Shown in pieces: positions 6,733 to 59,149 of a stretch of 64,000 nucleotides of DNA. The notes below the pieces were generated by a model. The model was not told where the DNA came from. It was given only the letters and a program-made list of their open reading frames with translations, and made no database searches. How positions within the stretch are numbered: position 1 is the stretch's first letter; each line of letters begins with the position of its first letter. The position numbers were made by a program, and so were the translations under genes. The stretch spans positions 310,001 through 374,000 of the forward strand of contig NW_021832430.1 of assembly GCF_006345805.1 (NCBI RefSeq), written 5' to 3'. The DNA comes from Octopus sinensis. Lineage: Eukaryota.

Positions 6733-7722
6733 TGATGAAAACCAACCAATAACTACAAGTTAATTAATTAAAAGCTTCAAGTGCGGGAAGCCGACGCGAT
6801 CGAGAAAGAATTAGAGCGAGAAAGAATTACATTACGTGCCCTCTGAGTTATCATCGGCGGTCGTAAAGTGGCACTCGCTAGGACTGGAAATCCCAGAGGA
6901 TCAGCATAAGCAATTTGTTTGGGACGAAGTCCGCCTACAATCCCGAATCCAATCTTTACGTACATCTTTCGACCAACACCGCTTGGCCTGCTTTGAGACG
7001 GCATGTCGCCCTCACAGCGGAGCCTGGCTAAATGCCACTCCACTGCCGAGCATTGGGAACCTTCTGGACTGCGAGTCCGTACGCACTGGAATCTGTTTAC
7101 GTCTCGGTCTTCGCCTATGCGAGCCACATGTCTGCCGCTGTGGCGCGAAAATCTGTCGCTTTGGATTGCACGCTCTATCGTGCAGACGCAGTGCTGGCCG
7201 CATCCCGCGTCACGCCGCTCTTAACGACCTTATCAGGAGAGCCCTGGAAGTCGCCGGAATCCCCTCCCTGCTTGAACCCACTGGGATCGATCGGGGGGAC
7301 GGAAAAAGGCCTGACGGGATAACTGTGTTTCCTTTCAACAGGGGGAAGCCTCTCACCTGGGATGCCACGTGTGTGGACTCTTTCTCGCCTCAGAACCTGC
7401 TGATGTCGGCCTCCGCTCCTGGATCTATTGTCACAACCGCGGAATGCAAAAAGATGCGGAAGTACTCCTCACTTACGGAGAAGTTCCAATTCCTTCCATT
7501 CGCGGTTGAGACTTCCGGTTCCTTGGGCAGTAAGGCAATCAGCTTCGTTCAGGAGATCGGATCCCGCATGTCTGCCATCACAGGCGACGCCCGCGAATCG
7601 AGATGGTTTTTCGAGCGGATATCCCTTGCGATAGTACGCTCTAATTCTTTCTTGATCGCGTCGGCTTCCCGCACTTGAAGCTTTTAATTAATTAACTTGT
7701 AGTTATTGGTTGGTTTTCATCA
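6733..7722 (+). mobile_element. 5'-truncated CRE-like retrotransposon capped by an inverted copy of its own 3' end; 13-14-bp TSD
   Basis: ORF 6836-7678 has CCHC and RPDG/WD/ETSG RLE motifs. 6733-6818 is the reverse complement of 7637-7722 (86 bp, 1 mismatch). ATCCATTTAAAATG occurs at 6716-6729 and 7722-7735. Confidence 0.93.
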
Positions 7723-7979: not shown

Positions 7980-8230
7980 CTCATTAAACTGTTTCCCCGG
8001 ATGATGGCAATCGAGAACCGTTGCATTAGCCAGTTCGCCTCCCGAGGATCATGGGTGCGCATTGAGATTTTGGCTCCGAGCTTGCGAAGAAACTTTTCTG
8101 TTTTTGGACCGAGAGCACCCGACGTCTCCGCCGCGATCGGCACCACGGAAAACTTCTCCGAGAGGGCAGAATATTTTAAAAGCTTTAAATCTTCAGCCTG
8201 AAGTAGGTTTTCTGGTGTCAAGATCAAGAG
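7980..8230 (-). mobile_element. CRE-like RLE fragment
   Basis: AEDLKLLKYSAL...PIAAETSGALGP...WLMQRFSIAIIRGNS. Confidence 0.8.
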
Positions 8231-8607: not shown

Positions 8608-9987
8608 TTATTGCTCAAAAAGAGAATAAAGAAATGAGCGAGCTCGCTTGGTCAAATCAGCGTCCCCAACCGTCCGCACCTTCGAGAAAAGAAAATTGCC
8701 ATCCGCTCTCTTGTCGACAATATCCCTCAATGTGGAAGAACTCATCACAAGATGACAACGCGGACCACTCAACTTCAACTTCTCAGAATCCAAATGAAAC
8801 TGAGGATTGTCCGACCGAAAGTCAATAGTCCACGTAACATTCACATCTTTGATCACTTACCCTCACAAACCATCGAATTTAATCGAAAACCGTCCCTTCA
8901 CTGAAGAAACCCCCTTGGCTGTGACCAATCCGTTCACTTGGTGGAGGAGAGCCTTCACGGAACTCTACATTTGACCTCCCCAAACACCAACTGTCTTTGC
9001 GATCTGTCCTCTGGCACGTACAGTCGCCTCAGCACTTCCCGTGAACAGATTAGGCATCAGCGGTGTCGACGTGTCGTCTACAAATATGGAAAAAGGAAAC
9101 CTCTAAGGGTATAGTACTCCAACTTTGAGCTATCGTCTAACACCAAGTCCTCGGCCAAACAGAAATTTCCTGTGAAGTCACGGGGGTCCTTGAGAACGAT
9201 TTTGACGAGGGCATCGGCCATCAAGTCGGGGGAGCAAGCATGTGTGATAAAATGCTTCCCAAAAATATGCTCAGTCGTGTTAGTGTCTATGACTGAGGAC
9301 TTTTCGAGGAGGGCAAACCATATTTCGACCAAAGGGAATTGACTGCCACTCCCTTCTCCCTAAACAACCCCGACAGACCACTCGTGAGGAGTGACTGGCC
9401 ATACTTAGTCAAAGCAAAGACTGAAAATGTCAGCACTGATTTACGTGAGTTTCCTCCGAACCACTTCGGGTCAGTGTCCATAGGCGGGGATATGTTGACT
9501 ACGTGGGCTCCTTTTCCATTTCTTTCCAAGTATTTGATTGTCTCCCTTATACTACGGGGAGTCAGTAAACAGAATACCAGTTGTATGGTCCGAGCATGTT
9601 GATGTTGTACATTAAATTAAAACTGGTCAAATCTAGGTCGGAGAGTGCTCGCAGTTTGGTGGATGCGCAGGAATTGACGAGGATGTCGAGCGAGTCAAAC
9701 TTTTTAAGTGCAGTGGCCAAGGCGTCCTGGATTAGCTGAGGACGACGCACGTCGAGGAAACAGGCGATGGCTCTCTCGGCTCCGCAGAAGTGGTTGACTA
9801 GAATTTTTAGTTGGATCAAACTTTCTTGGGCAACTGAGAATATTGTTCCTTCGAGGAATCGGTGGGGACTTATTGTCTTGCCTGTGATGATTACGTTGGC
9901 CCCATTTTGGGCTAATTTGAGTGCGATTGCCTTGCCAATTCCACGAGTAGAGCCTGTGATGAGTGCTGTCTTGCCCGAAAGACTCAT
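8608..9987 (-). CDS. HSDL2: HSDL2-like short-chain dehydrogenase with C-terminal SCP2 domain; about 7 micro-introns of 23-27 nt
   Basis: MSLSGKTALITGSTRGIGKAIALKLAQNGANVIITGKT...H..LEGTIFSVAQE, LDILVN, NISPP, AVNSLW, DFTGNF, SCP2-like tail. GT-AG introns (e.g. 9798-9821, 9421-9444) join the frames. Confidence 0.85.
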
Positions 9988-10719
9988 CACCACTCAATAG
10001 TTTTATTAATAATTAAAATAAAGATAAAAGAGACTAAAATATTAAACATAATAATATTTCGGATTCGGTTAACTCATACTTAATTTGCCTATTAGCATGC
10101 GGAAATAGAGGGGAGAGCCTCTAAGAGTGTAGAACCTCTAAGTGTTAAACCTCAAGGCGGTTTCTTCAATGAAGGAGTCGGTTTGCGATTATTTACATTG
10201 ATTAATTCCGCATACATGTCCCTTTTTACTCCTTTCCGTCTCGCATGAAAGTAGTTAATTTCCTAATTGTTTGTTAAATCTAAGTTTCTGCAACTTTTTG
10301 ATGCTGAAACCGGGTTTTTGACATCAAAGATAAAGCAACAGAAAAACTTCATCACAGGTTTAATATTTTTAGTTTCTTAGGTATTCATGGATGCTGCTTT
10401 TTTGTGTTAATTAAACTAATAAAATTTGTTTTAATTCATAAAAGTGGTTATAGGTACCATGCGTATTTAAATAATTTAATGAATATTTTAAATGTTGCAA
10501 CCTAGTGAGTGATTCCAGTTTTTAAATGCTTGAATTTGCATCCAATCCATCTGTTATTTATGATCCATATATTTTATTAGAGTATAATTTGCGAGAAAAA
10601 AAATAATCAAAAAAATTAATTATTTGTGCGTAAGGCCATTATGGCATCTAGAAGTTCGTCAAATGCGTTGTTCAACTTGCTTACTTGTCTTCTCCAGAGA
10701 AATTCGAAAAAAAATTGTT

Positions 10720-11609: not shown

Positions 11610-12782
11610 TTAACTGTTTTTGTTTATTTTATTAAAACGTAAAGTTTCATGTGAAATTTCTGATGGCATTTTAAATTTTTTCTTATATAAAAATGTAAAT
11701 TTTGAAACTATCACTGGAATTGGGAATGATATGATTAATATTCCAGAAAGAGAGCAGAAACCTGCCACAATTTTTCCATAAACTCCCAATGGTCGCTTAT
11801 CTCCATATCCAACAGTTGTCATTGTAATAATAGCCCACCAAAATGCATCCGGAATGCTTAAAAAGTTACTATTGACATTGGTTAATTCTGCGTAATAAAT
11901 TAACGACGAATAAAAGAGAATTGTGATCATAAAATAAACCAGCATTAGCGTCAAACAATCAAGTGAATAAAAAATAGCTTTTCCCAGTATTTCTAGACCA
12001 GTTAAATTATTTGATAACTTAAATATTCGAATTATTTGGATTATTAAACAAATCTGGTTAATTGTGTACAATATACTGTGTTTGATTAATCCATGAGCAT
12101 ATATAACTTCAAATATAGTTTGTATGTATAACGGTGAAATGCTTAAAATGTCAACTATAAATTTTCCAGAAAAACATTCTGAAATAATTTTATAAATCAA
12201 AAATAAGCGAATGATCATTTCAATTGTAAAATATGTTGTAAACAGAACTTCAATTGCAAAAATATAATTAATTTTGGAAAGACTTTCTATCCTTATATCA
12301 TTGTGTGGATAAGTGCGCAAACATAAATTTGCAATGGAAAGCAAAATTAAAAGATTTGAAAATATTTGAATAATCTTTCCACTCATAGATAAATCAGGAA
12401 ACTTTAAAGTTATCCATATAAATCTCAAAAAAAAATTTTCTGGGATATTTATTTCTTTCGGAACGTAATATGGACCAATTCCTTCGTCAGCATACATATT
12501 TTCGATCGACCGACGATCAATTTCAAAAAATTCTACTTCTCTTGTAAATATGTCTATATCGACGTTTCCTGGTTTTTTTAGGTTTCCCTCATTTTGGTAA
12601 TAATTTATAATTCCTTCAAAACTGTCTCGATGTCGGTCAAAAAAATATTCGTTTCTAGTCTTATCAAAATATTCATTTAATTTCAAAGGATTTCCCAATA
12701 ATGTTTTTGGAAATTTTTTAAAGTAACATTTGTCAAGTTCGAATTTTCGTCCACTGATATTAATAGAGATTATATCTAGCAT
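11610..12782 (-). CDS. Intronless Shaker/Kv1-like K+ channel alpha subunit with charge-depleted S4
   Basis: T1 domain (NISGRKFE, FPKTLLG, EYFFDRHR), six TM segments, pore FWWAIITMTTVGYGD, S6 PIPVIVS. Single 390-aa ORF. Confidence 0.93.
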   Translation of the reverse strand: MLDIISINISGRKFELDKCYFKKFPKTLLGNPLKLNEYFDKTRNEYFFDRHRDSFEGIINYYQNEGNLKKPGNVDIDIFTREVEFFEIDRRSIENMYADEGIGPYYVPKEINIPENFFLRFIWITLKFPDLSMSGKIIQIFSNLLILLSIANLCLRTYPHNDIRIESLSKINYIFAIEVLFTTYFTIEMIIRLFLIYKIISECFSGKFIVDILSISPLYIQTIFEVIYAHGLIKHSILYTINQICLIIQIIRIFKLSNNLTGLEILGKAIFYSLDCLTLMLVYFMITILFYSSLIYYAELTNVNSNFLSIPDAFWWAIITMTTVGYGDKRPLGVYGKIVAGFCSLSGILIISFPIPVIVSKFTFLYKKKFKMPSEISHETLRFNKINKNS

Positions 12783-22020: not shown

Positions 22021-23758
22021 TATTTTTTTTTGAATTGTTATTCATTTTATTACCAAAAACAACTAACACCGAAAATCGTTAAGTTCCAGCGGCGAGGACG
22101 CAGTGTGCGTTGCCCCGAACAATGGCCAGGCCGATGCGCTGGCGGAACCAGAGGCCCTCTCTCGAGTCCTTGAGCCTCCTCCCGATGGACTTCCCGACCT
22201 CTTTGAGGAACGAGTCAGTCTCCTTTCCTGCAACTCCAGCGGTCTCCAGGGCGATTGCCGTAACGCGGTAGCGGTCTGCGAGCGAAGAATATTTGTGTAT
22301 TTTGATCTTTTCGGCGTGGTTTGCAGCCGAACAAGGGTTTGCCGCAGAAGAATGGATCCTCGATTTCGAAAAGGTATCCACAACGGTGACATCCCATACG
22401 AGGGCCTTCCCCGACGAGTACGGGAATATTGTCATCCCGTCAGGCCTTTTGCCATCTCCCCGATCGAGTCCGACCGGTTCGAGGAGGCACGAATGGCCCG
22501 CCATTTCGAGGCCGGCCTTCACGATTTCATTGAGGGCCTTGTGTCTGTGTTCCCTGCCTGCGCTCCTCTTGCAGGAAAGTGGGTGCAGTCCCTTTTCGTC
22601 AACGTTCTCACCGCATCTGCAGCGGTGTTTTGCACAAACATCCAGGCCGAGACGGTGAGCCACTCCGATGCGTATGGCAGCATCGTCTAGCAACGTCCCG
22701 ATGCTGGAGAGAGGAAGAGCATTCAGCCAGCTGCCAGAGTGAGGGGCGGATGCCGCACGAAGGCATGCCAGGCGGTGTTGATCAAGGGTTGCAGAGAGCT
22801 CAGACACACGCGCTCGGCATGCAATAGAGTCCCAGGCACGTTGGGAGGAGAAATCTTCGGGCCTCTCAGAAAAGGAGCGATCCCAGGTAGTGAGCCCATC
22901 CGAAAAAGCACCATCCAGGCAAGATCCGAAAGATTTGAGTAGGATCTCAGAGGCCAGGTTGTTGCACATCGAAAGGGAGGATAGATATGCCGGAAGTGCC
23001 ACATCGGATGCAGTGCGGATTCCCGCACCTCCGAATCTCAATGGGAGCGAGCATTGGGCCCATCCAGGACCATCGAGGTGTACATTGAGGACGGATTCGG
23101 CAGTCTTTTTCAGGATTACGTCGTATGCGGCGAGTAGGTCCATATGCAGGAAGCAGGGATTGCTCCTGAGGGTGAAAATGAGTTTCGGCATATAAATGCT
23201 GTTCTTCAAAAGGAAAAAGGCAGTGTGCGAGTCCAAGATAGAAAGATTTGTTGAAAGTCTTTGGAAGTGTTCGGCTTTGGCGGAAAGCATGCATTGGAGC
23301 TTCGTGTCGGACAGGGATCCCCCGAGAAAGGTGACATCATCGATTGGGGTAACGTTCGCACAAGGCAGGGTTGCTCTGAGGCGGGCCACAGCGGATCGGA
23401 AGTCGGCCTCCGAACACGAGACATTAATGATCTCGGTCTTCTTCGCGTTGACCGAGAGGCCGAGGGTAGCCAGTGCTGGTACGATGTGTTCGACATCCCG
23501 AATAACGTGGTCAGCATGGCCACCCAATGTGGCATCATCAAGATACCACAGATTGAATTGAGGGACAGCAAGGCGAGCTGCCTCATCGATTGTCATCGCG
23601 AAGAGGAGTGGCCCTAGCGGATCACCCTGTTGCACGCCGGTCTCCGAACGGATGATCTCATTCCCGTATACAAGACTGCTCTCCGAGCCGTAGGCAAGCG
23701 AGACAAGATTGAAAAGACAATTCAAGACAATTCAAAATGAAGGGAAGGGACAATTCAA
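22021..23758 (-). mobile_element. 5'-truncated CRE-like retrotransposon (RT, CCHC, RLE; open 548-aa ORF 22079-23725), A-tail, 25-bp TSD
   Basis: GVQQGDPLGPLLF, WYLDD, CRCG..H.LSC..RH..LN, RPDG, ETAG. T9 run at 22023-22031. AATTCAAAATGAAGGGGTTATTTGA at 21996-22020 and 23759-23783. Confidence 0.95.
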
Positions 23759-24339: not shown

Positions 24340-24655
24340 TCTCTGGGATGACCACCTTTCCTTTTCAGAGAGGAAAGTGTCTGGTTTGGGACGTCACGTG
24401 CGTGAACTCCTTTCCCAATCGGAATATCAAATTGAGTATCGAAAATCCGGGAGCCCCGTCTGAACGTGCTGAGAAGAGAAAGAGTGAGAAATACGCTGGA
24501 ATTGGGAATGGCAGAGTGTTTGTCCCCCTTGCTGTTGAGACTTTAGGAATACAGGAGCCTACTCCTGCGAATTGGCTCACTAATCGAAAGGGTTACCAGC
24601 GACCCGTCTGAGCACCGGTATTTAACAGGACGAATAGGCATAGTCAGAGGCAATA
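24340..24655 (+). mobile_element. CRE-like RLE fragment
   Basis: GMTTFPFQRGKCLVWDVTC...AEKRKSEKY...VPLAVET; small internal deletions relative to 50690-50920. Confidence 0.85.
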
Positions 24656-27389: not shown

Positions 27390-28890
27390 GTCAGAATGCG
27401 GTATTCAGCAGGGTTTGTCCTCTTTGTTGACCATATTAGACTGAACGTATCGTCCAGTGTTAACTTTTGGTACTTGGATGACTTTACGATTAGTGAACAC
27501 ACCGAAGTCGTTATGAAAGACATAAACAAAATCACTTCCAGTTTTTCAAAGAGCTGACTATCTCTAAACAGCGGCAAATGCAAACCCGCCGATATTTGTA
27601 TTGTCCCCGCCGCTCTCTGCCACACATTCTTATCTCTTTGCAGCCTGATTGATGGGTTAAGGATTACGTCTACCAGCGATCTAGATATCTTAAGTTCTCT
27701 CATTTCCGCCGATGGCATAGTAAAAGCCTTATCGTCTAAATGGGCCGAAACCAAACTCCTTACTTATCGGATCCGTAAGCTTGGCTCACATCTGGCGTTT
27801 TTCCTATTAAAGAACTTTTTTTCGGTCCCAGACTGACCTACATTCTCTGATCTTCCCTGTTTTGTTGCCGCTGATTCATTATCAAGAATCGACAATCTCG
27901 TCCACGAATTCTTAACATTCCATTTCAATTCAAGGATCACTGATGACGGTTTTACTCATGCCAGCCTACTCACATGTTTCAGGGGGATCGGGATCCACTC
28001 ATTTACAAACCTGCTCGTGCCTTGCCATCTTTCTTCCACGTCGGCTTCCAAGAATTCCCTCGAACTTAACGAGTTTTCGGACTACACTCTGCTTCCTGTG
28101 CTTGGTGCCTACTTGGCCTTGATTTTCTTGCGATTCCTTCAGTCCAAAGGGGCTGGAACGAAATCTGCCTAAATAAATTACGCAAATTTCGTTCAAAGTC
28201 AGAAAAACTCCAACTGGCCTCACGAAACTGCGCTTGTCAGCCGCATACGGGAGACTGGCTCAAAACACTCCCTATCCTCACCACGAGATTAATACTGGAT
28301 GATGAGTCCTTACGAATGTGTATCTGTTTACGCTTGGGCTTTAACATCTGTTAATCCCACCCTTACCGGTGTGGGTCCACAATTTTGTCTAACGGCTTGC
28401 ACACATTGTTGTTTAAGAAGAGTGCCAGTAGAATTCCTAGCCACACTCAACTTGATAGCGCTGTCAGGAGGAGTCTAGAGTCGGCTGGTTTCCCTTACAC
28501 TCCAGAGCGTTGCCTTTTCCGGAGCGACGGCAAGCGTTCCAACGAGATGACGACCCTTTCTTTCTGAGAAGAAGACGTCATCTGCGTCGACTCTTTTTCG
28601 GCAATGATGCTACTCAAGACTTGCAGCAACCCAGGCTCCGGCAGTGGTCAGGAGGAAAAAAAGAGGACAAAATACCTGTGTATTCTGAACTCTTTTGAGT
28701 TTGCTTCTTTGCCTTCAAAACCTCAGGAATTGTCGCCAAGGCCGCGACTCAATTCCTCACTGACATTAGTAAGAGAATCTCCTCGAAAACAAACGACCTT
28801 AGAGAGACGAGCTAGCTGTTTCAGCAAATCTCGGTCGCCGTGCTTCGCGGAAACTGCCATTCAATACGCAGCGTAGCGTCGTTGAGCTGA
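27390..28890 (+). mobile_element. Degenerate CRE-like retrotransposon (RT to RLE)
   Basis: CGIQQG, FWYLDD, GKCK, SHTQLDSAVRRSLESAGFP, RSDGKRS, across many frameshifts. Confidence 0.75.
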
Positions 28891-32239: not shown

Positions 32240-34020
32240 AGACAGACGATGCAAACTTTGTCGGCTTCAGGAGCTGGGTAAATGTTTGGTCGACCTCAAG
32301 CTGATTTAATCAGTAAGCTCAAAAGATCTATTAATGATGTGACCAAAGTAAAAAAGATGCCAGGTTTTTATTTGATTTGGTGGCTCTCCTAAAAGAGGGA
32401 AGCAGTCACCAAATAAATCAAATGTAACCAGGATTACTCTGGTTAATGCCCGCTCTCCTCAAAAGCGGATGAATTTATTTATCGTTTATTTTCTTTTAAA
32501 GCACAGTTCGGATGAATTTATTTATCGTTAACGAGACGAAAATCAAGAGTCTGAGAGTACAGTGCGACCTCGAATTTTGGAAAACTAAGTAGCTGGGAAA
32601 CTTTCTTTTTGTAGAAAACTTTGCTTTGGAGAAATATTTTTGCCATTCCTGTAAAATACGACGATTTTCAGTAAAATAAAACCCCTATTGGAAATGTTCC
32701 TCAAGCATGGAAGAGGACAATTTTTTGCATGATTTCGAAGAAAAGAAAACCGAGTTCTGATTCTGCAAATTAAAGACAAATCGGTACTTTTGCATTTCAT
32801 CCTGCACGAAAATAGCCACTAAATGAATTAATGAAAATTTTTATGAATATTAAATCGAAAATTTAAAAAATTGAACTATGCCGATTTTGTAAATTTTATT
32901 TTTAAAAAAATTTGAATTTTTAACCGGCTTGTGGAGATGAATGATACAGTTGTCATGCGAAAATTTGCAAAACTGAAGGACTATGAACTTCCCCGTACTG
33001 AAATGGAGTCAGTTGCCTTCCTTCAAGAGGTTGGAATCTTTCCCAAAGAAAAAAATGTCAAAACAGACATTTTATGACCCTTCTCCAACAGCGGGAGAAT
33101 ACAACATGGGTGTGCCATAAAAGTGGGTGTCGAACATATAGTTCAAGTGAGCCATTTAGACAACTCCTTCGATGAGCTAATAGATGCCATTGTCAAATTT
33201 TGTCCCCCGAATATCACGCTTCGTAGTAACAGCTGACCTTTTTTGTTGTAATAAAGATTTTTTCACTGAGGGAATGATGATAAGCATCTTTATTAACCAA
33301 CAACTGTGTCTTTTTAGACAGGTGGTCGTTAATAGCTCAGATTTAATTTTGTCGGTATTGTTTTGACACCACTAAGCCTATAAAAAATTCAAATTTTTTT
33401 AAAAATAAAATTTATAAAATCGGCATAGTTCAATTTTTTAAATTTTCGATCTAATATTCATAAACATTTGCATTAATTCATTAAAGTGGCTATTTTCGTG
33501 CAGGATGAAATGCAAAAGTACCGACAAATCAGCCTTAAATATTCTATCCAAAAAATCATGGAAAAAATTGTTTTTAAAAATTGTCAACTTATATTGAAGA
33601 TAAAGAGTATTTTTTGCAAGAGCAATGGGAATTTTGGAGTAACAAAAATGCTGAAAATTGTTTTTCAGGGATAAAGGAGGCTATACTTACAGCACAAAGG
33701 AAAAAAGAATATCTTACAACCGCATGTCTAGACATGTCAAAAGCATTTGATAGCGCCTGCCATGCCTGGCTATTACGAACTTTATATAATTTTAACGTTG
33801 GAAAGACAGCCCTAGTTTGGATAAGGAGCCTCCTCTCGTGAAGAGGATCGTTTGTACGGGTCGGAAATTAATTGTTCCAAAGAATTTTGTCCAAGAGAGG
33901 AGTTCCACGTGGATCTGTCATCAGTCCACTTTTATTTAATTGTGTGATATATGAAATTCCTCAAGTGGATCATCCTAACTAGAGATGACTATTTACGCAG
34001 GTGATATTTCTATTTTACAG
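32240..34020 (+). mobile_element. Degenerate Jockey/I-like LINE (ORF2 start and RT) interrupted by a Merlin element
   Basis: ITLVNARS...FIVNETK, then ISKKRKPSSDSAN-RQISL..IMEKIV, CLDMSKAFD, GVPRGSVISPLLFN, YAGDI. Confidence 0.8.
32783..33522 (+). mobile_element. Non-autonomous Merlin (ISXO2/IS1595-like) DNA transposon, ~150-bp TIRs, 8-bp TSD
   Basis: Ends GGTACTTTTGCATTTCATCC / GGATGAAATGCAAAAGTACC; TSD GACAAATC at 32775-32782 and 33523-33530. Internal AFLQEVGIFPKEKKC..H.M.L...WVCHKSGCR zinc-ribbon remnant; DDE core missing. Confidence 0.88.
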
Positions 34021-40630: not shown

Positions 40631-41202
40631 ATGAACCCTACAATGCGTCGCCTTTTACGTGACCTTGCAAGGTAATGTGAAATCTTTAATAAATAATAGA
40701 ATCGAAAACGATTTTAAACAAGATATAAGTGCGACGCCAACGGAACAAGATTTCTACGTTTGGGACGCCATTATTTGTGGGTAAAAACAACATAGACAAA
40801 TTTAGACCAAAAGATACTGCATTTGTCAACGGAATATTCAAATTGAAACTGACATTTACTTCAGAATACCCCAACAAACCCCCCAAAGTCAAGTTTGTCA
40901 CAAAAATGTTTCACCCTAACGGTACAGCTGTTGAGTCAGTTTTAGTTTATGCCGACGGGAACATTTGTTTGGATATTTTAAATTCAAAGTGGAGTCCTAC
41001 TTTTGACGTGGGGGCTATTTTGACGTCTATTCAGTCTCTCCTGGACGACCCCTTTATTCAAAGTCCAGCCAATTATCAGGCAGCGACTCTTTATACACAG
41101 AACAAGAGGGAGTACAACAAAATAGTCTCTGAGCTGATTGAGTCTAACCTCACTCCATGCGAAGAAGAGTCTGAAAACGAGGATGAACAAGTCGACTCCT
41201 AA
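40631..41202 (+). CDS. UBE2A: RAD6/UBE2A-type ubiquitin-conjugating enzyme E2, introns of 28, 25 and 24 nt
   Basis: [24 protein letters not shown]|[33 protein letters not shown], acidic tail. Introns 40672-40699, 40781-40805, 40922-40945. Confidence 0.92.
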
Positions 41203-44959: not shown

Positions 44960-47900
44960 AATTTCTCTGTTCACGCTAGCATCCTTCAACGTTTGGGAGC
45001 TGAAGTCGTCGGTCAAAAGGAGGTCACTCTGCTAGGATCTGAAAAGATACAACATCACTATCTGCTGCCTGCAAGAAACCAAATTCAAAAAAAGACTTAA
45101 CGAACAAAATGCTGACCATGAGCTTATCTTGCTTCTTTCGAACTGTCACAACTACGAAATGGGGTTCGCGGTGGATATCAAAGTTCGGGAATATATAAAA
45201 AGAATATAGAAAGTGAATGACAGAATCTGCGTAATTCAATTGGAAACTGGATCTAAACCGACAATTACAATTATAAATGTATATGCGGCTACTTCTCCAA
45301 AAGTCTCTAAAAACCGAACGGAACTGGATGACTTTTACAGTTCACTATGTACGACCCTTATGGAAATATCCACGAGCTATCAACTTTACATAAGTAGAGA
45401 TTGGAACGCGAAGATCGGAAAAGGAACCAAAGAACTGAGCTTCATGGTTACCCATGGGAGAGGTCGAAGGAACATGTCTGGGGCAACTATGGCCAACTTC
45501 GTGATCAATAAACAATTATTTTATTTTTTTTGACACGTCAATTTTTTTTAAATGGAAAAGAAATCATCAAAAAAAAACTAGCTACTATGAACTGGCTCGC
45601 AGGATTGAAAAACAATTCCCGCGTAAAACAAGGCCCGTTGGTTCCAAGATACAAGGGAAACCAGCTCTTTCCAGAGCTTTCTGAATTAGATTGTTGATTT
45701 CGGTGTGCCGAGGAAATCGGCCGGCGCTCATTCGACAAGACAGAGGATGTAGCCCAAAGGCGTCAACTTTATCCCCACAACGACATGGGTGAGGTCTGCA
45801 AACAGGGAGTCCAAGGCGATTACAGATACCCAGACGGAGTGAATCCCTATCGAGGACAGTATCCAAAAGCGGAGAAGGGAGAACATTCAGCCAGGAGCCT
45901 GAGTATGGCTGACAGGCGGATCGGAAACAAGCCAGTCTGTGTTGGTCGAGGAGTGGTTCCAAGTCAGTTGAAGATCGACGGCAAAGAATTTTGTCCCAGT
46001 CTCGCTGAGAAAAGACATCGGAAGGGACTTCAGAGAAATTACGTTTCCAAAAAGCGAGGGCCGAATTAATATCAGAGTCCAACGATGATTCAGTAGTTTT
46101 TTCCAGAATCTTTTGGACAAGAAGATATGATCCAGACGCCGAAGAAAGAAAGGCAGGAAGAGCCAAATCCATACTAGAACGGAGGCCCAGACCCCCGTGA
46201 CTCACAAGAAGTTTAGCCTGACACCAGGCAATATCGTCGAAATGCACATTGAGAATTTTCTCCGCAGACCTCCGAACCAAGGAATCATAAGATTCCAGCA
46301 TTTGGGTTGCATAAAAACAAGGTGAGCTCCTCAGGATATAAACAATTTTTGGGATCAAAAGATAGTTCTTGAGGATGTAAAATGAAGGATGAGGATCAAT
46401 GACAGAAAGTTTTTCACAGAGATGCGATAAGATTTTTCTTGGCAAGGAGGATTCGAGTAGCTGAGTCGGCGAGAATCGGTGACCTCAGAATTTCCAGATC
46501 AGACAGAGGTGTCTGCCTCAACTCAGGAAGGAGTTTGCAAAAAAGAGAGAAAGAGTTCTTAAACAGGGATGGCTCAACAGAGAGATTGACAATCTCGGAC
46601 TTGCTGGAATTAATAACCAGACCAATGTCGGATAAAGCCGGAATTAGTCTGGCTAAGTCCTTTAGCAAAACATCAGGCGGACCGTCCAGGGTGCAATCGT
46701 CGAGATACCAAAGATTAAGGGGCGATTCATTAACGCGGGCAATGGCATCCACTGCAAGAGCGAACAGTAATGGGCCCAAAAGATCACCCTGTTGGACGCC
46801 ACAGGACGAAGAAATGAAAGAATTACCGGTGATTAAAAGTGATGGAAGCGAGTACGAAAGCGAAATAAAGGGAAGTAAGTGTGGAACACGGTCTTGACAG
46901 ACCTCCAACATATGACCACGGTCCAGAGAATTGAAAGCATTAGTTACATCCAGTTTCAATAAGGCAAGGGGAATATTGAAACGAGTAGAACCGTGAATAA
47001 AACAACGACAGGCATGGACAGAAGACTCGCAACCGCCAGGAACACCCACACCCAACTGAATGGGCTGCAGTTGCTCGCCAATAGAAGGAATAACGGACTT
47101 GCAACAGACTTTCGCAAATAAACGGCGAAAGACATTTCCAACATCAATAGGCCTGATACCGCCATCTTTCCTGCCCAAGGCCGTAAGATTCGCGGAAAAG
47201 AACAAAATTCTAGCATGGTCAGAAATTTTGCCGCTCAGGAATAAATTGCACAAGTTAGTGCAAGCATTCAAGAGGCGATTCCCGGTATCCCCATTGGCGG
47301 AAATTCAGTCTCTCAAATGAATAGGGCGGAGACCGTCGATACCTCCACTACTGTTACCCCTAAAGGAGTTTAAGGCGTCCAAAAGTTGTTTGGAAGAAAC
47401 AGAAAAGGGAAAACAGGGCGGTTGGGCCACATCAAAAGTTACTGGTTTTCCAATAGGGTGCTTTTCCTTGAGAATGCGAACAACATCGGGGGTGATTGTA
47501 CGGACAGAATCAGAAGATGACAAGAGACGAACAGCCGCGCTGACATCATGCGACATTAAGCAGGAGTTAATCCGAGACCGTAAACGTTTAGAACCGTCCT
47601 TCGACGAGGGCTTAGCGGTAGAAGGTAAATGAGAGGGAGACGGAGCGAAAGAGCCATTCATAAACTGACTCATATTCTTTTTCAAAAGAGAAACAAAGGA
47701 GGCACCGGCAACGGGGCGACGAGCAGGGGAGCCCAACGCAAAAGTTGGGAAAAGGAATAAACGATTCCAATTATGAATGGATGGATCGGAAATGACAGAC
47801 TCAATTAAAGAAGAAAGGTTTAGGGCCACCGAAATACGGGCTGTTGAATATTTAATCACTGTTGAAAATGATATGAAGCAGCGTTTCAAATATTTGTGCG

Positions 47901-48648: not shown

Positions 48649-50026
48649 TAATTTTCAAAATGTCAATTTGAATCTGTTATTTAGTATTTAATTAATAGCA
48701 GAGGATAAGATGGAATGGCAATTCCCACGCAAGATGGCTATTGATATGCGTTGGAAAAGCCATGTCCGTTCCCGATGATCATTTCTTCTTCTGCTTGCCA
48801 AATCCCCCAGTTTAATAAGGAATTTTTTAGTTCTGGGGCCGAGGACTCCCGATGTCTCCACTGCGATCGGGGCAAAGATATGGCGGTGAGATAATGCACT
48901 GTATTTCTTGATTTTTAGCGTTTCGGCCAGGTTGGCTGCGGAGCCCGGCTCTGAAGCTGACGTCAAGATGTTCTCGACGGAGAAGGTATCCGTGCAAGTA
49001 GCGTCCCAGATGAGAGACTTGCCATTCTCAAATGGGAAGGTCGTTAGACCATCAGGACGTTTACCATCCTCCCGAGCCAGCCCGACCGGTTCCAGCTGTG
49101 AAGGGAATCCGGCAGTTTCCAGAGTCCGCTTGACTATGTCGTTCAGAGCAGTATGTCGAGGGAAGCGTCCGGAACTTCTTTGGCACGATAACGGGTGCAA
49201 TCCAAAGGGGTCCACGGTCGATCCACAGCGACACCGGTGTTCCCGGCAGACGTTCAGTCCTAGGCGCAGTGATATGCCGATCCTCAGGCAATCATCGTCC
49301 AATAAGGTTCCAATAGAACCCATTGGGATAGCGGTCAACCAAGCCCCCGAATATGGTTGTGAGGCAGCCAATAAGCAAGCCAAGCGATGTTGGTTAAGCT
49401 TAGACTTGAGGTTGTTCAACTTCTGGTCGCAGAGGATCCTGTCCCATTCGACCTGTGCGTGCGGATTCTGAGGGAGCTCAAGAGACAACCCAAGCCAGCG
49501 GCTTTTTGCGACGACTAACTCTGTGTCCAAAGAAGATTCGGAAAAGGGTTGGAGAATCTCTTGGACAAGGGTGCTCGTGGCATGTGTGGAGGAAAGGAAT
49601 GCTGGCAAAGAAAGGTCAGTGGCTGAGCGCGCACCGATGCCGCCATGTCTGATAGGGAGTATTGCCTGTTCCCAGCCAAGATCGTCGAATGGTGCATTAC
49701 ATATTGATTCGAGGCAAGTCCTAAGAGCATGGTCGAATCTGGAAAGACTCTCGGGATTGGCAAAGCATGGTGCGCTTCTGAGGGTAAACAGTAGTTTAGG
49801 AATGGCGAAACAGTTCCTCAATAAGAACAGGGCCGAATGGGAATTGATGCTACCAAGATTACAGGACATTGACGCAAGGTTTGATGTTTTTCTGATAAGG
49901 TAGAAACAACACCGGAGTGAAAAATCGGGGAACCCAGAATCTTGAGATTTCCGGGCGAAGTGACATGGATGTTAGGAAGTAATGACTCGACAGAACAATG
50001 GGCAACAGAGAAACGGTGAACATCAT
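48649..50026 (-). mobile_element. 5'-truncated CRE-like retrotransposon (open ORF 48688-49869), probable 12-bp TSD
   Basis: Thumb, CCHC, RPDG, ETSG, RISIAILRGN motifs. AACTGATATTAG (48637-48648) versus AACTGATGTTAG (50027-50038). Confidence 0.9.
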
Positions 50027-50639: not shown

Positions 50640-51975
50640 ATATTTTAATCATTTCTTTTATTAAAAAAAACCAAGAGAAAAATGGTCATTGGCAGATAGC
50701 CAGAGTATTGCCTCTGACTATGGCTATAGATATTCGTTCGGTTAAATACCGGTGCTTAGACGGGTCGCCGGTAACCCTTTCGATTAGTGAGCCAATCCGC
50801 TGGAGTAGGGTCCGAGTAGAAGGCCCCTGTATTCCTGACGTCTCAACAGCCAGGGGGACAAACACTCTGCCATTCCCAATTCCAGCGTATTTCTCACCTC
50901 TCCTCTTCTCAGCCCGTTCAGACGGGGTCGGTCCACACGCCGCAGCGGAATTGGTGTTTTGCATAAACGGGTAGACCGAGTCGTAGACAGACTCCAATTC
51001 TTACGGATTCATCATTAAGAAGGCAGCCAGTTGTATTACAAGGGTAACAATTTAGCCAAGCGCCGCTTACGGGCTGGCTACCCGCTTGTAAACAAGCCAA
51101 CCTTATCTGGTCCATGGTTTCCTTTAGCCTTGAAAACGTATTGGCGTGGACTTTCGACGTCCACTCCGATTGGCAGGTCACATCAGACGGCAATGGCAGT
51201 CCCAGCTTTTCCCATACGGCGACGCAATCATCCACAGCAAATGAATTCCTCTGTTCATTTATTTGAGAAAGAACAGTGTCGATCATATTTCTGGAAGAGA
51301 GTACTGAGGAAAAATATGCCCGTGCGCTGAGTCTGACGGGGTGATCAAGCCGATCCCTCCAAGGGAAACTGGGAGAGTCGCCTGTCTCCACGACTGCGTA
51401 TCGAAGCTGACGTTCAGGATGTCCTCAGTGCAAGCTCTCATGTGCTTGGAATAGTCTTCGACTAGTACTGGGCAGTCCTCAAAACGTATGTTAACTTTGG
51501 AATAGATAGACAGTTCCTCAATAAGAAGAGCCCAATGTGGCTATCCACACAACGTAATTTTTCAGAGAGAAAGGAAAATTCCGAAATTTTAGCCTTCATA
51601 ACACTTTGATACCACTTTCAAAAATAGGAGATCCAAGAAAAATCAAGTCTTCTTTGAGGGGAAGGTGCATCCAGGTAGCAGTTTGTCGAATTCGGTCATC
51701 CACTTCCGAAAGGAAAGTTCGTCCGTGTTGACATTCACAATTTTACATTTGCCGCAGTTAAATTCAAACCTCAGCGCTCCGAAATTAAACACAAAAGACT
51801 TCAGCGTTTCCAAGATGCCTTCGGGGGTTCCTCCAATTACTCCATCATCCAAATACCACATGTTAAGGTCAGTTTTACACGATCTCGTTGTTTGGTGGAT
51901 TGCGAGGGAGAATAAGAGAGGACCTAGAGGGTCACCTTGTTGAACTCCATTGGTAGAATCAAGTATGGTATCATT
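50640..51975 (-). mobile_element. Degenerate CRE-like retrotransposon with deletion of the CCHC-RPDG region
   Basis: GVQQGDPLGPLLF, WYLDD, QATLPVSLGGIG, RCGVWTDP joined to PSERAEK, VPLAVETSG, RISIAIVRGN. Confidence 0.88.
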
Positions 51976-53566: not shown

Positions 53567-55430
53567 AATTTAATTCATTAAGTGAGAATCTTTGTGACAG
53601 GGATCACCAAATTTAATTTCAAGTTCTCAAATCGGAGAAATCTCAAAGAAACGCATATACATCTACCTTTGTGCAAAATTAAAATGAGTTCGATTTCAAA
53701 ATTAAAAACACAAATAGACCTGTCAAGTTCAAGAATTTGGTTAAATGCCTTATAACTGGGCAGTTGATCATGCGATGCAAAGTGCTTTAAAATGCTATAA
53801 AATAAATTAACTTATTAAGTAAGCAGATGATGAAAAATTTACCAATCTACGTTTTTAAAAAATTAAAATCTTTGTTCCGAATATTCGCATATATTCTGAT
53901 TTTACGCAAATATTTACATGCTGTCTTTGACTTTGTTAATAATTATGCACTTAATCTATTGTATTAAATAATATTTTATTTAGCAGCCAACGTCGGTTCT
54001 GACATTAATGTATTTATTTGGCAGTTTTATAAATATAGAATGCCTTCGATGATATACAAAAATTCTTCGATAATTCCTTTAAAAGAGGTTATGTTTGCAA
54101 TAAATATTTAAGGAAATCAAAATTCCAACATTTGTTTTTTAATTCCGGCATTGACAGTAATACTGGTGGTGGCATATTTGTAACATCATTTACTTAATAT
54201 TGTCTCATTTCGGTTTCTAACTTTCGTTTATTTAATTTATGTCAGTTTTTCTTAGCGTTTTTAAGCTTTAAATAAAGTTACTCTTATCCGTTCTGTCTTT
54301 TAGTTAATAATTGAATAAATGATGTATTTTTTTGTTGGAAACTTTTTTCGATGTCCATTTTCAAAAGTGAACATAAATAATAATAAAGATAAAAAAAGAA
54401 AATTTATAATATAAAACAATTTGGGAAGCGACATTACTGTTGTGCTTAAAACCAATAATTTTTCGATCGGAGCTATGAAGATTTACAACACGTAATGCAA
54501 CATAAAATCGATCAAAAAGGCACAAATTTCTCGCCGACAATCAGAAGAGTTTACTGAATTTCAAAATCAAAAAGATGTGCAAAACTTTTTAAATAAATTA
54601 GAAGAAACCAAACTTTTTAGGGAAGGCCATTCTCTAAAAAATAAGAAATTCGGGCCAGTAACGATAATTCTAAAGGATGACCCAAATTGGATGAAAATTG
54701 AAGGACTTGAAGACTTCCCGAAAGGAAAAATGAAAGGAAAATGACTTTCAAAAGCCTTTAGAAAAGGAGAGTGAGACTGCCTATCATTAAAATTGTAACT
54801 TCTGATCACGGAGAAGCTTAATCGTTTGTATTTTTAGTTCTAAAGATCGGCTTTTCGAATGTAAAGGCGCAAAGGTACAAAAAATCGGAAGTCTAGTGCT
54901 ATCAATGCAAGGGTTTGGGACATAGCACGCTTTTGTAAAAATCAGGAGAAATGTCTATTTTGTTCGACACATATGCTGGAACAGACTGCAAGGACTAACA
55001 TGAAAAAATGTGTCAACTGCAGTTTTCGACACACTTGGCAAATTATCGGGCTGTATGAAAGCCAAAGAAGATTCAAAGGTTAAAAATAAGAAAATATTGG
55101 CGTGAAAACTGTTAAAAGAAGCTTCGGAGAATGCCAAGATCAACCAAAAAGATATAAAAAAATTCAGCCTTGAAGCCATAAGCAGGATGGAACGTTCCAA
55201 GATTTAGAAAAACAGCTGAAGTTGGAATACAAACAGAAGAAACGGCTATACAGACTTTGTCGACTTCAGAAGCCGGGTTAATGACGAGTCAACCTCGAAC
55301 TGATTTAATCAGTAAGCTCGAATGGTCTATTAAAGATGTTACAATAACTAAAAAAGATGTCACGTTTTACTTGGTTTGGTGGCTCTCCTAAAAAAGGGAA
55401 GCAGCAATTAAATAAATCAAATGTAACAAT

Positions 55431-58400
55431 AAAGCTAAATTGCACGTTGTTGCTGTTGTGGTGCACTTTTTTCTTTTTCTTTTCATTGTTATTTGCTATC
55501 CAATAATCCATTGTTGCTTCCCTTTCTCTTTTTTGTTTTTCTTTTCCTCTTTCTCTTTCTTTCTATCTCACCAATAATCCATTTATTGCTAATTCTAATT
55601 TTCCATATCTATGTCTGTCTGTTCTGTTTGCAATATCCGTAATAATCGGAAAAAGACCATCCGTTGTGACCGTTGTTATGCCTTTTTCCATTTATCCTGC
55701 ATCAAGCTTTCTAAGAAATCTGCCTCTTCCCTTTCCCGATGGGTTTGCTCTGCTTGCTCTTCTTTCCCCCGTCATATTTCGCTCCTGCCATCTGTACCGG
55801 GTCCTCTGATTTTACTAATCCTATCCCTTCGCCGGACCCCTTCCTGCTTAATCCAGAGTCTGTCTTAAGACTCGCTCGTGATTACCGGGCGTCCTATCGT
55901 ATTCCTATAAGAATTCCTCGTTCTGCCCGTTTTTCCGCGGCGAAGGCTCTGTCTGCTTTGATCGAGTCAGTCATTTGTGTTCAGTCCATTCCGAATTGGA
56001 ACCGTTTGTTTTGCTTCGCCATATTTGCCCTGGGCTCCCCAGTTCAAGGCTTGGGCTCGGTAAAATCCCTTTCCTCTTCCATCAAGGAAAATATTAATAA
56101 GTTCATGGAGGATTCCTTCATTCTGCCTCCTCTTCTGGGCAAGTCCCATGAACCAACTACTCTTAAAGATAATCGTATTCGTTTACGCAAACGTGTCAAT
56201 TCCTGCCTTATGGCGCATGATGTCGGCTCTGCGGTCCGTATTCTTTCGTCTTCCGATTCCGTCCGTTCGATAACCCCGGATGTCCTCAAAATTCTCAGCG
56301 CCAAGCACCCGGCTGGCGATGTCCCTGCCTTTTGTGCCCGGACCCCTGAGGAGGTCTCGATCGCCTCTTCATCTGTCCAACAACTTTTGTTCGCTTTGAA
56401 ATCTTTCAGGGGGAACAGTAGTGGTGGTGTTGACGGTCTCCGTCCCATTCACTTAATGGACCTCATCTCCAATACTGCTGAGGCTGGAAACCGTCTTTCT
56501 CAATCCATTGCCAAGCTTTGTAACCTATTTCTCCGTGGGGACATATCCGAGCATGCCAGACTGCTCTTCTTCTCTGCGAACCTGTCTGCTTTGGGGAAGA
56601 AAGACGGCGGCATCAGACCTATTGCCGTCGGGAACGTTTTTTGTCGCTTGTTTGCAAAGGTCGGATGCAAGCTTGTAATTCCTTCTATTAGCGACGAACT
56701 CCAGCCTATTCAGTTGGGTGTGGGGGTACCTGGTGGGTGCGAGGCCTCGGTCCACGCTGCCCGGTGTTTCATTGAATCGGCTCGTCTCTCAGAGCGGCCC
56801 CAGTTATTATTAAAATTGGATGTGAAGAACGCTTTCAATTCGCTCAATAGAAAGCATCTTCTTGAGGTTTGCAAGGCCAGAATTCCTTCTCTGCTGCCCT
56901 TCATTTTTCTTTCTTATGGTAACCCGAGCCTCTTGGTTGCTGGCGATTCTTTCATTTCGTCTTCCTGTGGCGTACAGCAAGGCGATCCTTTGGGTCCTTT
57001 ATTATTTGCCCTCTCGGTGGACTTTGTCGCCCGCAGGATTGCGTCCCCTCTTAATATTTGGTATTTGGACGACTGTACTATTGGTGGTCCGCCCGACATT
57101 TTGCTAAACGACTTGCAATCTCTACTCCCGGCGTTGTCATCTATTGGTCTTGAAATCAATTCTCTAAAATCTGAAATCGTTAATCTTAACGTCGAAGACC
57201 TCACCTTCGAAGACCTTTTTGCCCAGTTTCGTGGCCTCTTGCCCGATCTGAGGCAGACCTCTCATTCTGAACTTGAAATCCTGGGTGCCCCGATCCACCA
57301 CCAATCGGTCTCTCGTATTCTCGATTCCAAGAGAAATGCTCTTGCTTCTCTTTGTGATAAACTTGTGGACATCGATCCCCATCCCGCTTTTTTTATCCTC
57401 AAAAACTTTCTTTTGATTCGAGGATCAATTATGTCCTAAGGAGTTCCTGTTGCTTCTCTGTTCCCTCTGCTTTGGAGTCTTTTGACGCTCTGGTGCGTTC
57501 TTCAGCCGAGATTATTTTTAACGTCAAGTTCGATGATGTCGGTTGGCGTCAGGCCAAACTTCCTGTTCCTTTTGGTGGGCTTGGGCTCCGCTCGGCTCTC
57601 GACATTTCTCTTCCCGCTTTCCTTTCATCGTCTTCAGGATTGTATCTTCTTGTCCATAAGATTCTTGAAAAATCGCCGGATCTCGTTTGGACTCTGATAT
57701 TAATTCTGCACTTTTGCTTTGGAAGGAAAAAGGGCTTGAGTTCCCTTCTGATAGGTCCCTCCAACGTGAATGGGATAAAATTCTTAGTAAGCATCATGCG
57801 GACTCGTTGGAGGCTCTCCTGAACCAGCACAGACTGGCTTGTTACCGTGCCAGCCGCCAACCGCATTCTGGCTCTTGGCTTAACTGCCTTCCTTCGACCC
57901 ATTTGGACACCTGTCTTGACTCCGACGCCCTCCGTTTTGGCATTTGCCTCCGCCTCGGACTTCCGATCTGTAGTCCCCACCCCTGCCGGTGCGGATCTAC
58001 TATGGACGTATACGGGCTCCATGCCCTCTCCTGCAAGAAAAGCGCGGGTCGTATTCCACGCCATTCGGCGATTAACAGAATCATTCTCGACTCACTCGAA
58101 AAGGCCGGCTACCCTTCTGTCCTTGAGCCTAAGGGTCTCGACCGTGGTGTCGGGAAAAGGCCGGACGGCTCTACGTTGTTCTCGTTTTATTCTGGGAGAC
58201 CTTTGGTCTGGGATTCCACTTGTGTGGATACCTTCTCAAAGTCTTTCATCAACGAATCGGCCTCTCTTGCTGGGTCTCGTGCTAATAAGGCTGAGCTTTC
58301 GAAGTGCCGGAAATATCAGTCTTTGACGGATGACTTTTGGTTTTGGCCAATCGTTGTCGAGACTTCCGGCGTCTTTGGCTCCGGGACCCTCACTTCCCTA

Positions 58401-58582
58401 AAGAAATTGGGACATCTTTGTTCTTCGCGGTCCAAGGACCCTAGGGAATTTACTTTCCTCATTCAGAGGATCCTGCTGGCTGTCATGCGTGGCAACAGCT
58501 GTTCCCTCCGTCTCGCTGGGAGAATTTATTAGTTTGTTGACTTTCCTTTTTTATTATTCACATTAAATAAGTAAAAAAAAAA
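55431..58582 (+). mobile_element. Apparently full-length CRE-like retrotransposon with PHD finger, A13 tail and 12-bp TSD
   Basis: AAATGTAACAAT at 55419-55430 and 58583-58594; A-run 58573-58585; pyrimidine-rich 5' UTR; empty-site paralog at about 32420. Confidence 0.93.
55611..58532 (+). pseudogene. PHD-RT-CCHC-RLE polyprotein broken by three frameshifts (about 55770, 57420, 57680)
   Basis: C4HC3 PHD (CSVC...CDRC...FHLSC...WVCSAC), RT motifs (KDGGIRPI, LDVKNAFN, QQGDPLGP, WYLDD), CRCG..H.LSC..RH, RPDG, WDSTC, VETSG. Confidence 0.9.
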
Positions 58583-59149
58583 AAATGTAACAATTATTAC
58601 CCTGGTTAATTCCTGCTCTCTTCGAAAGCGGGAAGCTAAGCTGATAGATCTTATCAGCACAGTTCAGATAAATGTATTTATCATTAACAAAACAAAAATG
58701 AAAGTCTGGAACTATCATTATTCATAGATACAGCTCAATGGTATCCTTTGGCATCATGGTGTCTAAGCTGGGATAGAAACATTAATATTTTACAAAAAAT
58801 CTATTGATATTCGGAATCCTGATTAGCTAACTGTAACACACACTTTTAATAAATAGTTAATTTTTCTACGTAAATTCTTCTAAACTCGCCGTCAATTGGT
58901 GGTCAAGTGTGTTAATATTTGTTCTAATTCTCTTATAAGTGGTTAGGTGTTTTTAAAAATTTGTAATTGCACTTTATTCAAGGTCGTTTTTTATTTAACC
59001 GAAAATCACAAACGGTTGATTAAATAAATTAATTAGGCCATCCAGACAACCCGAAGGAAGGTCGTCAGCTTTCCTATGTGATATTTAACAATTTTTTAAT
59101 TATTAATTTATTATCTTACATCTTAAGTACACGTTACAAGGTTCAATTG

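Follow-up and report, generated by a model that had tools for sequence, protein, structure and literature searches.

Target-primed reverse transcription (TPRT) now has its main model in LINEs (long interspersed elements) with a restriction-like endonuclease (RLE), namely R2 and the elements related to it. R2 (R2Bm, R2Tg) combines an N-terminal zinc finger and a Myb domain with a C-terminal CCHC knuckle and PD-(D/E)XK endonuclease and is targeted to the 28S rDNA. The trypanosomatid elements CRE1, CRE2, SLACS and CZAR, likewise of the RLE type and with one or two open reading frames (ORFs), reportedly carry an N-terminal C2H2 finger. Their insertion is site-specific in spliced-leader genes (PMC3636483). 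RLE-type LINEs are being engineered for transgene insertion, and it is the N-terminal DNA-binding module that sets the destination (PMC13580325). In metazoans the group is represented by the CRE-II branch with Cre-1_BM of Bombyx mori and its lepidopteran relatives, whose single ORF spans about 900-990 aa and encodes a helical domain (RIPKGAR...W..L..F), a CCHC knuckle and an RLE. We analysed 64,000 nucleotides from Octopus sinensis (contig NW_021832430.1, positions 310,001 to 374,000, forward strand; this whole stretch is called the window and supplies all coordinates below), which contain an element of this type with a predicted PHD finger at its N-terminus.

LINEs of the CR1/L2 lineage have been described with a PHD finger, either in ORF1 or N-terminally in a single ORF, with no functional study of it (PMC4120745); that some APE-type LINEs carry one in ORF1 had been noted in the original prediction. 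Like the octopus element these are dispersed and carry an N-terminal PHD of about 50 aa, but they possess an apurinic/apyrimidinic endonuclease (APE) and belong to the Jockey superfamily, in contrast to the element described here, which belongs to the CRE group and has an RLE.

The 3,152 bp between 55431 and 58582 on the plus strand very probably represent a non-LTR (long terminal repeat) retrotransposon of the CRE-II lineage, in a copy that is structurally complete and inserted very recently. Its R2-like polyprotein includes a basic PHD finger. The copy is delimited by the following features:

55419-55430 (strand not applicable): left copy of the target-site duplication (TSD), AAATGTAACAAT, an exact 12-bp repeat of 58583-58594
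55431-55610 (+): 5' untranslated region (UTR), 180 nt, 74% pyrimidine, 53% T
58533-58572 (+): 3' UTR, 40 nt, with ATTAAA at 58562-58567
58573-58585 (+): poly(A) tail, a run of A13 whose final 3 A overlap the right TSD copy
58583-58594 (strand not applicable): right copy of the TSD, AAATGTAACAAT, an exact 12-bp repeat of the left copy
32341-32560 (+): proxy of the empty site, a paralog of the host repeat with which the joined flanks align uninterruptedly across the junction

That the element is full-length, as originally predicted, is borne out by the exact 12-bp repeat, the paralogous empty site and the location of all domains. AAATGTAACAAT occurs exactly twice between 55000 and 59000. The paralog at 32341-32560 is 79-92% identical to the flanks of the element. 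It runs through the insertion point without a break and holds AAATCAAATGTAAC only once, at 32415, which shows that 55431-58582 was truly inserted; the duplication was made on insertion. The predicted 12-bp TSD and A13 tail are both present, but three A are shared between them, so that the right end can be read as A10 followed by a 12-bp TSD or as A13 followed by a 9-bp TSD. The motif ATTAAA at 58562 ends 5 nt upstream of the A run. The host sequence is an AT-rich stretch of another dispersed repeat. Terminal repeats (LTRs or terminal inverted repeats) were not found in the element.

A TSD of 9-12 bp, a tail of A10-13 and a paralogous empty site are footprints of TPRT, by which the element would have entered the dispersed host repeat. 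Nicks set by the C-terminal RLE with a stagger of 9-12 bp would give rise to the duplication. The first letters of the duplication are AAA, so that after nicking of the bottom strand its T-rich 3' end may have annealed to the poly(A) tail. We infer these details of cleavage and priming.

The single polyprotein consists, in this order, of the basic PHD finger, a flexible linker, a helical N-terminal domain, the reverse transcriptase (RT), a thumb/linker region, the CCHC knuckle and the PD-(D/E)XK endonuclease. The domains and motifs are located as follows:

55620-55757 (+): PHD finger, C4HC3 (Pfam PF00628, E=3e-9, 37.1 bits at a cut-off of 24)
55898-56035 (+): helical N-terminal domain (RIPxxxR...W...F), placed by alignment with relatives
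56597-57286 (+): RT, extent of the Pfam match (RVT_1, PF00078, E=3e-17)
57062-57073 (+): RT motif YLDD
57984-58034 (+): CCHC knuckle with the spacing C-x-C-x9-H-x3-C
58059-58316 (+): restriction-like endonuclease, PD-(D/E)XK, every family-invariant residue present
58059-58076 (+): endonuclease motif RH..N
58125-58130 (+): endonuclease motif EP
58155-58169 (+): endonuclease motif RPD
58206-58232 (+): endonuclease motif WDxT
58302-58316 (+): endonuclease motif K..Y

This is the order C4HC3 PHD, RT, CCHC and RLE read originally, with Pfam matches for the PHD and RVT_1 and the invariant C-terminal residues marking the remainder.

Both the sequence and the model identify the N-terminal finger as a genuine PHD. 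Its zinc ligands follow the pattern C-x2-C-x11-C-x2-C-x4-H-x2-C-x15-C-x2-C, with a Trp two residues before Cys7, as usual. The best sequence matches in the PDB are UHRF1 (E=2.7e-6), PHF12, WSTF, BPTF and DPF3. In an AlphaFold2 (AF2) model of the N-terminal 155 residues of the window copy, residues 1-50 reached a predicted local distance difference test (pLDDT) score of 88-96. Foldseek superposed the PHD on solved PHDs with a root-mean-square deviation of 1.1-1.9 A over 47-53 residues, namely on AL3 (5yc3), AL1 (5y20), TAF3 (5c13) and PHF2 (3kqi). The linker between PHD and helical domain (residues 51-70) was modelled with low confidence (pLDDT <55). The motif of the helical domain reads RIPxxxR...A..L...W..L..F.

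The closest intact relatives, like many others, also have this PHD N-terminally, and in 16 N-termini that share only 22-41% overall identity none of the eight zinc ligands varies. An exhaustive profile (hidden Markov model) search with PHD plus helical domain against 1.84 billion cluster representatives gave 4,618 matches at E<=1e-3, of which 500 reached E<=1e-10 and 64 reached E<=1e-30, and the majority of the best 150 cover both the PHD and the downstream helical domain. It was used instead of a word-indexed profile search, which returned 9 matches, missed its own input sequences and was uninformative. Some of the matches to several stretches of one protein turned out to be ordinary host proteins with multiple PHDs (ORC3-, bromodomain- and NSD-like) and were excluded from the family. 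The full-length members with PHD and RT according to Pfam include a protein of Diaphorina citri (KAI5728591.1, 1010 aa). In the close relatives P0005 (L010) and P0007 (L009), which at first sight have no PHD, the finger lies in frame upstream of the called start; because such gene calls begin at an internal Met, the PHD is under-reported in the database proteins of this family.

By these comparisons the PHD is a conserved feature of the lineage and not a chance fusion. An absence of the finger from other full-length copies, which the original prediction had named as a sign of chance fusion, was looked for, and the finger proved present. The architecture is far from rare, since hundreds of clusters in the sequence data show it. 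The original prediction could not confirm that it is undescribed; searches of full-text literature gave no description of a PHD in CRE or any other RLE-type LINE, while Repbase and Dfam may already contain such consensuses. The PHD module is an apparently undescribed yet widespread alternative in CRE-II.

For the placement of the RT we compared it by blastp and phmmer with the RLE-LINE reference alignment of Mahbub et al. 2017 (supplement S5B, PMC5678591). The best match was Cre-1_BM (Bombyx mori, LINE/CRE-II) with E 1e-92 to 1e-106 and 41-42% identity over 350-423 aa. Cre-1_BM and its lepidopteran relatives share with the element the RT motifs GGIRPIAVG, PxQLGVG..GGCEA.VHA, LDxKNAFN, QQGDPLGP and WYLDD. 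After CRE-II, the next-best matches were the trypanosomatid elements, with E 1e-14 to 1e-20 at an RT identity of only 23-29%: SLACS with E 1e-19, and CRE2, CRE1 and CZAR with about 1e-14, a value also obtained for Cre-1_HM. R8 (5e-12), Utopia (3e-7), R2Bm (9e-7), HERO (1e-4), Dong (3e-4), NeSL (0.1) and R4 (0.25) followed.

The distance by which Cre-1_BM scores ahead of R2, HERO, R4 and NeSL supports an assignment of the element to the CRE group and, within it, to the metazoan CRE-II branch (Repbase Cre-1_BM type). The earlier label "CRE-like" is thereby refined. We also calculated a neighbour-joining tree from 80 sequences and 427 columns with 100 bootstraps. Cre-1_BM, the window element and every homolog of it fall together there, separate from R2 and trypanosomatid CRE; the bootstrap of the element's own subclade is 83, that of the deep nodes below 50. 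Membership in HERO, R4/Dong and NeSL/Utopia is ruled out by the pairwise RT scores. The R2 clade was rejected, too, with 9e-7 for R2Bm and 5e-12 for R8 against 1e-92 for Cre-1_BM and with no rDNA at the insertion site. The CRE clade proper was rejected since the site is a dispersed repeat and not a spliced-leader gene, and the N-terminal finger is a PHD and not a C2H2 finger. Among molluscs, CRE-type LINEs are reported to be nearly exclusive to cephalopods, in whose genomes the clade has already been annotated (PMC10294476), and apart from its PHD the element is an ordinary representative of it.

At least 10 further, diverged CRE-II fragments lie in the same 64 kb, with 33-63% aa identity to the element:

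45630-47889, 48709-50012, 50695-51963 and 22085-23716 (-): diverged CRE-II fragments
6836-7672, 27414-28702, 1414-1803 and 24345-24551 (+): diverged CRE-II fragments
3923-4270 and 7988-8200 (-): diverged CRE-II fragments

Three of them are crowded into 45.6-52 kb. The PHD region is missing from every fragment through 5' truncation or decay, and several have short A-rich 3' tails. The window contains no further copy of the PHD; the remaining CRE-II fragments are 5'-truncated or older.

The C-terminal 281 aa gave no Pfam match and no match to sequences in the PDB. Their assignment builds on an alignment with 24 full-length relatives, by which the C-terminal invariant residues were defined. All of these are retained in the window copy (C100, C102, H112, C116, R125, H126, N130, E147, P148, R158, D160, W175, D176, T178 and K206), and the spacing C-x-C-x9-H-x3-C of the CCHC knuckle corrects an earlier reading. 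No Exo_endo_phos (APE) domain was found in the element, for which Pfam gives no endonuclease family and only RVT_1 besides the PHD. An RT followed by CCHC and PD-(D/E)XK in a single ORF with no APE is the hallmark of the RLE-type (R2-group) LINEs.

For P0002, which is the closest homolog with an intact frame, an AF2 model calculated from a 56-sequence alignment reached a pLDDT of 90.3 and a predicted template modelling score (pTM) of 0.85. It matched the cryo-electron microscopy structures of R2 TPRT complexes (9nl3, 8gh6, 9nl2 and 8ibz) with E 1e-16 to 1e-18 and template modelling (TM) scores of 0.52-0.57 across 770-950 columns. LINE-1 ORF2p was the next structural match after these complexes. 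For the RLE piece, a search of PDB sequences gave no match, and only the fold comparison ties this piece to R2. Because of the invariant CCHC and RLE residues and the match of the P0002 model to the R2 complexes, the protein can be regarded, at the level of the models, as an R2-like machine from end to end. The overall architecture is shared with R2, to which the likeness in mechanism extends by inference; similarity to R2 in the RT sequence is weak (E about 1e-7 to 1e-10).

The reading frame of the element was mapped by tblastn with the intact homologs P0002, P0003, P0004 and P0009 (891-985 aa). These align to four colinear ORF segments in frames 1, 3, 2 and 1:

55611-55778 (+): ORF segment 1, start codon at 55611, with the PHD at 55620-55757
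55757-55800 (+): frameshift interval 1 (-1), in which the homologs change frame; a C5 run at 55766 lies inside
55799-57417 (+): ORF segment 2, helical N-terminal domain and reverse transcriptase
57406-57421 (+): frameshift interval 2 (-1), overlapped by T4 at 57411-57414, with A5 (57401-57405) and T7 (57388-57394) just upstream
57421-57674 (+): ORF segment 3, thumb/linker, 44-52% identical to P0002/P0003/P0009
57675-57690 (+): frameshift interval 3 (-1), with an A5 run just upstream at 57668
57687-58532 (+): ORF segment 4, linker, CCHC and PD-(D/E)XK endonuclease, stop codon TAG at 58530-58532

The four segments amount to 960 codons, among which there is no stop codon. A 566-aa ORF maps to contig VCDQ01001009.1 of assembly GCA_006345805.1, and the best named protein matches come from O. 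sinensis. All three breaks are -1 shifts, and each interval holds or abuts a homopolymer of at least 4 bases, in agreement with the earlier view that the frame is broken only by three apparent single-base losses. Since the losses are of the same sign and associated with homopolymers, and since there is no other damage next to a perfect TSD and a pure A tail, two readings fit: slippage in an extremely young copy, or deletion errors of a long-read assembly. Single-base losses in homopolymers are the typical residual error of such assemblies. The frameshifts may be assembly errors, in which case the genomic copy would be intact.

Alternatively it might be that the frameshifts are real mutations and the copy is a dead relic of a lineage extinct in this genome, for which the PHD is irrelevant here. 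We consider the chance of this only a little short of even. The three breaks themselves point in this direction, as does the protein database, in which no other copy more than 70% identical to the RT of the element was found and which yields no family consensus. A relic is less easily reconciled with a perfect TSD, a pure A tail, 960 codons free of stops and the retention of all invariant catalytic residues, or with shifts that are all single-base losses in intervals with homopolymers. Furthermore, the architecture is under selection in the relatives even if the window copy is dead.

In relatives clustering with Cre-1_BM, most of them lepidopteran, a single C2H2 finger (C-P-x-C-x3-R-x-F-K-G-x-R-G-L-x-I-H-x4-H) takes the place of the C4HC3 PHD, at an equal distance upstream of the RIPKGAR domain. 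That related RLE lineages use a C2H2 finger had been stated in the original prediction and is seen here at the very position of the PHD. The relative P0032 carries both fingers. Because C2H2 and PHD share their position and P0032 has both, the N-terminal finger is an exchangeable module in CRE-II. Three PHD-type relatives of metagenomic origin, P0148 (1436 aa), P0161 (1395 aa) and P0165 (1256 aa), have an extra C-terminal ubiquitin C-terminal hydrolase (USP/UCH) domain (PF00443, E down to 1.6e-57), which is located after the endonuclease on contigs of 4.6-5.6 kb. It recalls the Ulp1 protease of NeSL, from which it differs in protease family and position.

In H3-binding PHDs an Asp at the end of strand beta1 (after Cys3) is highly conserved, reading of H3K4me3 requires an aromatic cage with a conserved Trp and that of H3K4me0 an acidic pocket, the binding face is acidic, and the PHD of UHRF1 has a pI of 5.1 (PMC3214078). 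We surveyed charge and residues in 97 PHDs followed by the CRE-II N-terminal motif, 86 of which were parsed for the Asp. It is present in 13 of these 86, Ser being the residue most frequent after Cys3. Two positions before the His, where the cage Trp is presumably placed, the family PHDs show no conserved or aromatic residue. The loop between Cys2 and Cys3 (loop 1) has a charge of nearly always +2 to +5 and the consensus N-x-R-K. The median net charge is +6 over the 97 PHDs (family median +5 to +6), only 2 of 97 being at or below 0, and the window PHD has +9 compared to -8 for the aligned segment of UHRF1. At family level neither the Asp nor an aromatic residue two before the His is thus conserved, and the charge is basic where a canonical H3-tail reader has an acidic face.

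Since the finger is conserved, strongly basic and without conserved H3-binding residues, we infer that it contacts a negatively charged ligand and is not a canonical reader of H3-tail marks. It would serve as a contact module at the N-terminus, as the corresponding finger does in R2-type enzymes, but would bind irrespective of sequence. Candidate ligands are the target DNA, the element's own RNA and the nucleosome surface (acidic patch). A comparable case is the plant Polycomb accessory protein VIN3, in whose PHD a positively charged face abolished H3-tail binding, while DNA and RNA were bound weakly and non-specifically (PMC9640981). The likeness to the VIN3/VEL proteins is that of a basic PHD without H3 binding and with weak DNA/RNA binding only; these have a tripartite superdomain, and we claim no homology past the PHD fold.

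The original prediction had suggested that an element with such a PHD may choose its targets by chromatin state and not by sequence. In this case the finger would bind the H3 tail and tether the complex to a chromatin state, so that targets were picked epigenetically. The charge of +9 in the window copy and of +5 to +6 in the family, where UHRF1 has -8, is at odds with this, although the finger is a bona fide PHD whose nearest solved relatives are the H3 readers UHRF1, BPTF, TAF3, ALFIN and Pygo. Both the Asp that follows Cys3 and the Trp two residues ahead of Cys7 are present in the window copy, whereas in the family the H3R2-binding Asp is limited to 13 of 86, loop 1 carries +2 to +5 and an aromatic residue two before the His is not conserved (PMC3214078). 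Dispersed insertions would suit a chromatin reader, and Metcalfe and Casane proposed that the PHDs of LINEs may generally serve in targeting (PMC4120745), but in VIN3 it was precisely a basic PHD surface that abolished H3 binding (PMC9640981). Altogether the analysis of residues and charge does not support H3-tail reading, which we regard as very unlikely.

The PHD might also be mainly a protein-protein or nucleosome-surface adaptor, whose binding of nucleic acids is incidental. It could, for instance, place an arginine anchor on the acidic patch of H2A-H2B, contact a host factor of chromatin or replication, or act in nuclear import. The conserved basic loop N-x-R-K next to a flexible linker has the appearance of a tethered module, binding to the acidic patch was proposed for the basic VIN3 PHD superdomain (PMC9640981), and some PHDs bind non-histone peptides, e.g. 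PHF2-VRK1 and Pygo-BCL9, both among the fold matches. Sequence data alone, however, cannot separate such an adaptor from nucleic-acid binding; we hold this explanation to be unlikely. Distinctly unlikely in our estimation is also that the basic PHD is a true chromatin-targeting module, binding e.g. the nucleosome surface or histones in a non-canonical mode, which steers the R2-like RLE enzyme to a chromatin context and not to a DNA sequence. If true, this would be a natural exchange of the N-terminal module (C2H2 to PHD) in an R2-like TPRT machine with an altered targeting logic.

Evidence on target choice comes from a sister PHD-type family (sample ERZ26859072, L004-L008), which corresponds to the 170-member cluster of P0006. 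Identity among its copies is 97-99%, and L004 has an intact ORF of 1046 aa, so from its sequences this family is probably young and active. The flanks of the five copies are unrelated to each other. One copy has an 18-bp TSD, CTTTCTAACTTTCTAACT, while the TSDs of the other four are ambiguous; one adjoins (TAA)n and has an A25 tail. Together with the position of the window copy in a dispersed repeat, this agrees with dispersed, non-site-specific insertion of PHD-type elements, unlike that of trypanosomatid CRE or R2, and the original prediction had likewise spoken of dispersed insertions. These sites are far too few to derive a target logo or to relate insertion to chromatin. The 5' UTR of the sister family is about 690 nt long and includes a tandem duplication of 125 bp (L004 1261-1510).

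Several observations weigh against the picture of a very recent CRE-II copy with a swapped, basic, non-H3-reading PHD. Besides the lack of a second close copy mentioned above, clear TSDs are limited to one in the window copy and one in the sister family. The low bootstraps of the deep nodes leave the monophyly of the PHD type and the direction of the C2H2/PHD swap not established, and the C2H2 finger was seen in homologs clustering with Cre-1_BM and not at the N-terminus of Cre-1_BM itself. The window copy retains the Asp after Cys3 (position of UHRF1 D334), so that H3 binding by this particular copy is possible, and the proposed ligand is deduced from charge and residue conservation only.

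The PHD-type elements represent a whole lineage of R2-like enzymes with a conserved, strongly basic PHD instead of a C2H2 finger and with dispersed sites. RLE LINEs join the APE-type CR1/L2 LINEs as carriers of PHD fingers (PMC4120745). PHD-type and C2H2-type CRE-II elements offer a natural pair for comparing the part of the N-terminal finger in target choice, and intact sister copies of the L004 type could serve as material for a retrotransposition assay.

The 5' UTR is pyrimidine-rich over its 180 nt, as had been noted. The small inverted repeat TGCAC...GTGCA at its beginning, to which attention had been drawn, has no meaning as a structural element and is attributed to chance: the UTR folds with -10.7 kcal/mol compared to -9.0 +/- 2.6 for shuffled sequences (z = -0.63), i.e. 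no better than these and with no significant structure. No direct repeats were found in the 5' UTR and no tandem repeats in the region of 44-64 kb. The coding strand is rich in T and C beyond the UTRs as well, with an AT skew of -0.27 and a GC skew of -0.11 (56-58 kb) and 60% pyrimidine in the ORF. The G+C content of the element is 0.49, that of the flanks about 0.35. Its CpG observed/expected ratio amounts to 0.92, and for this reason there is no sign of methylation-driven decay.

Some further features were observed in the window:

40729-41202 (+): uninterrupted ORF of 157 aa with a UQ_con domain (E=1.8e-35)
11610-12782 (-): ORF of 390 aa with BTB_2 and Ion_trans, Kv-type potassium channel, apparently single exon
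9562-9993 (-): short-chain dehydrogenase fragment (adh_short, E=5.5e-18)
2896-3681 (-): integrase ORF with rve and Integrase_H2C2
5211-6704 (-): ORF of 497 aa without Pfam match

The UQ_con ORF may be a retrocopy or an intronless gene, and the Kv-type ORF may be a real host gene in a transposon-rich stretch. The integrase ORF points to an LTR retrotransposon. The ORF at 5211-6704 adjoins the CRE-II endonuclease fragment at 6836-7672.

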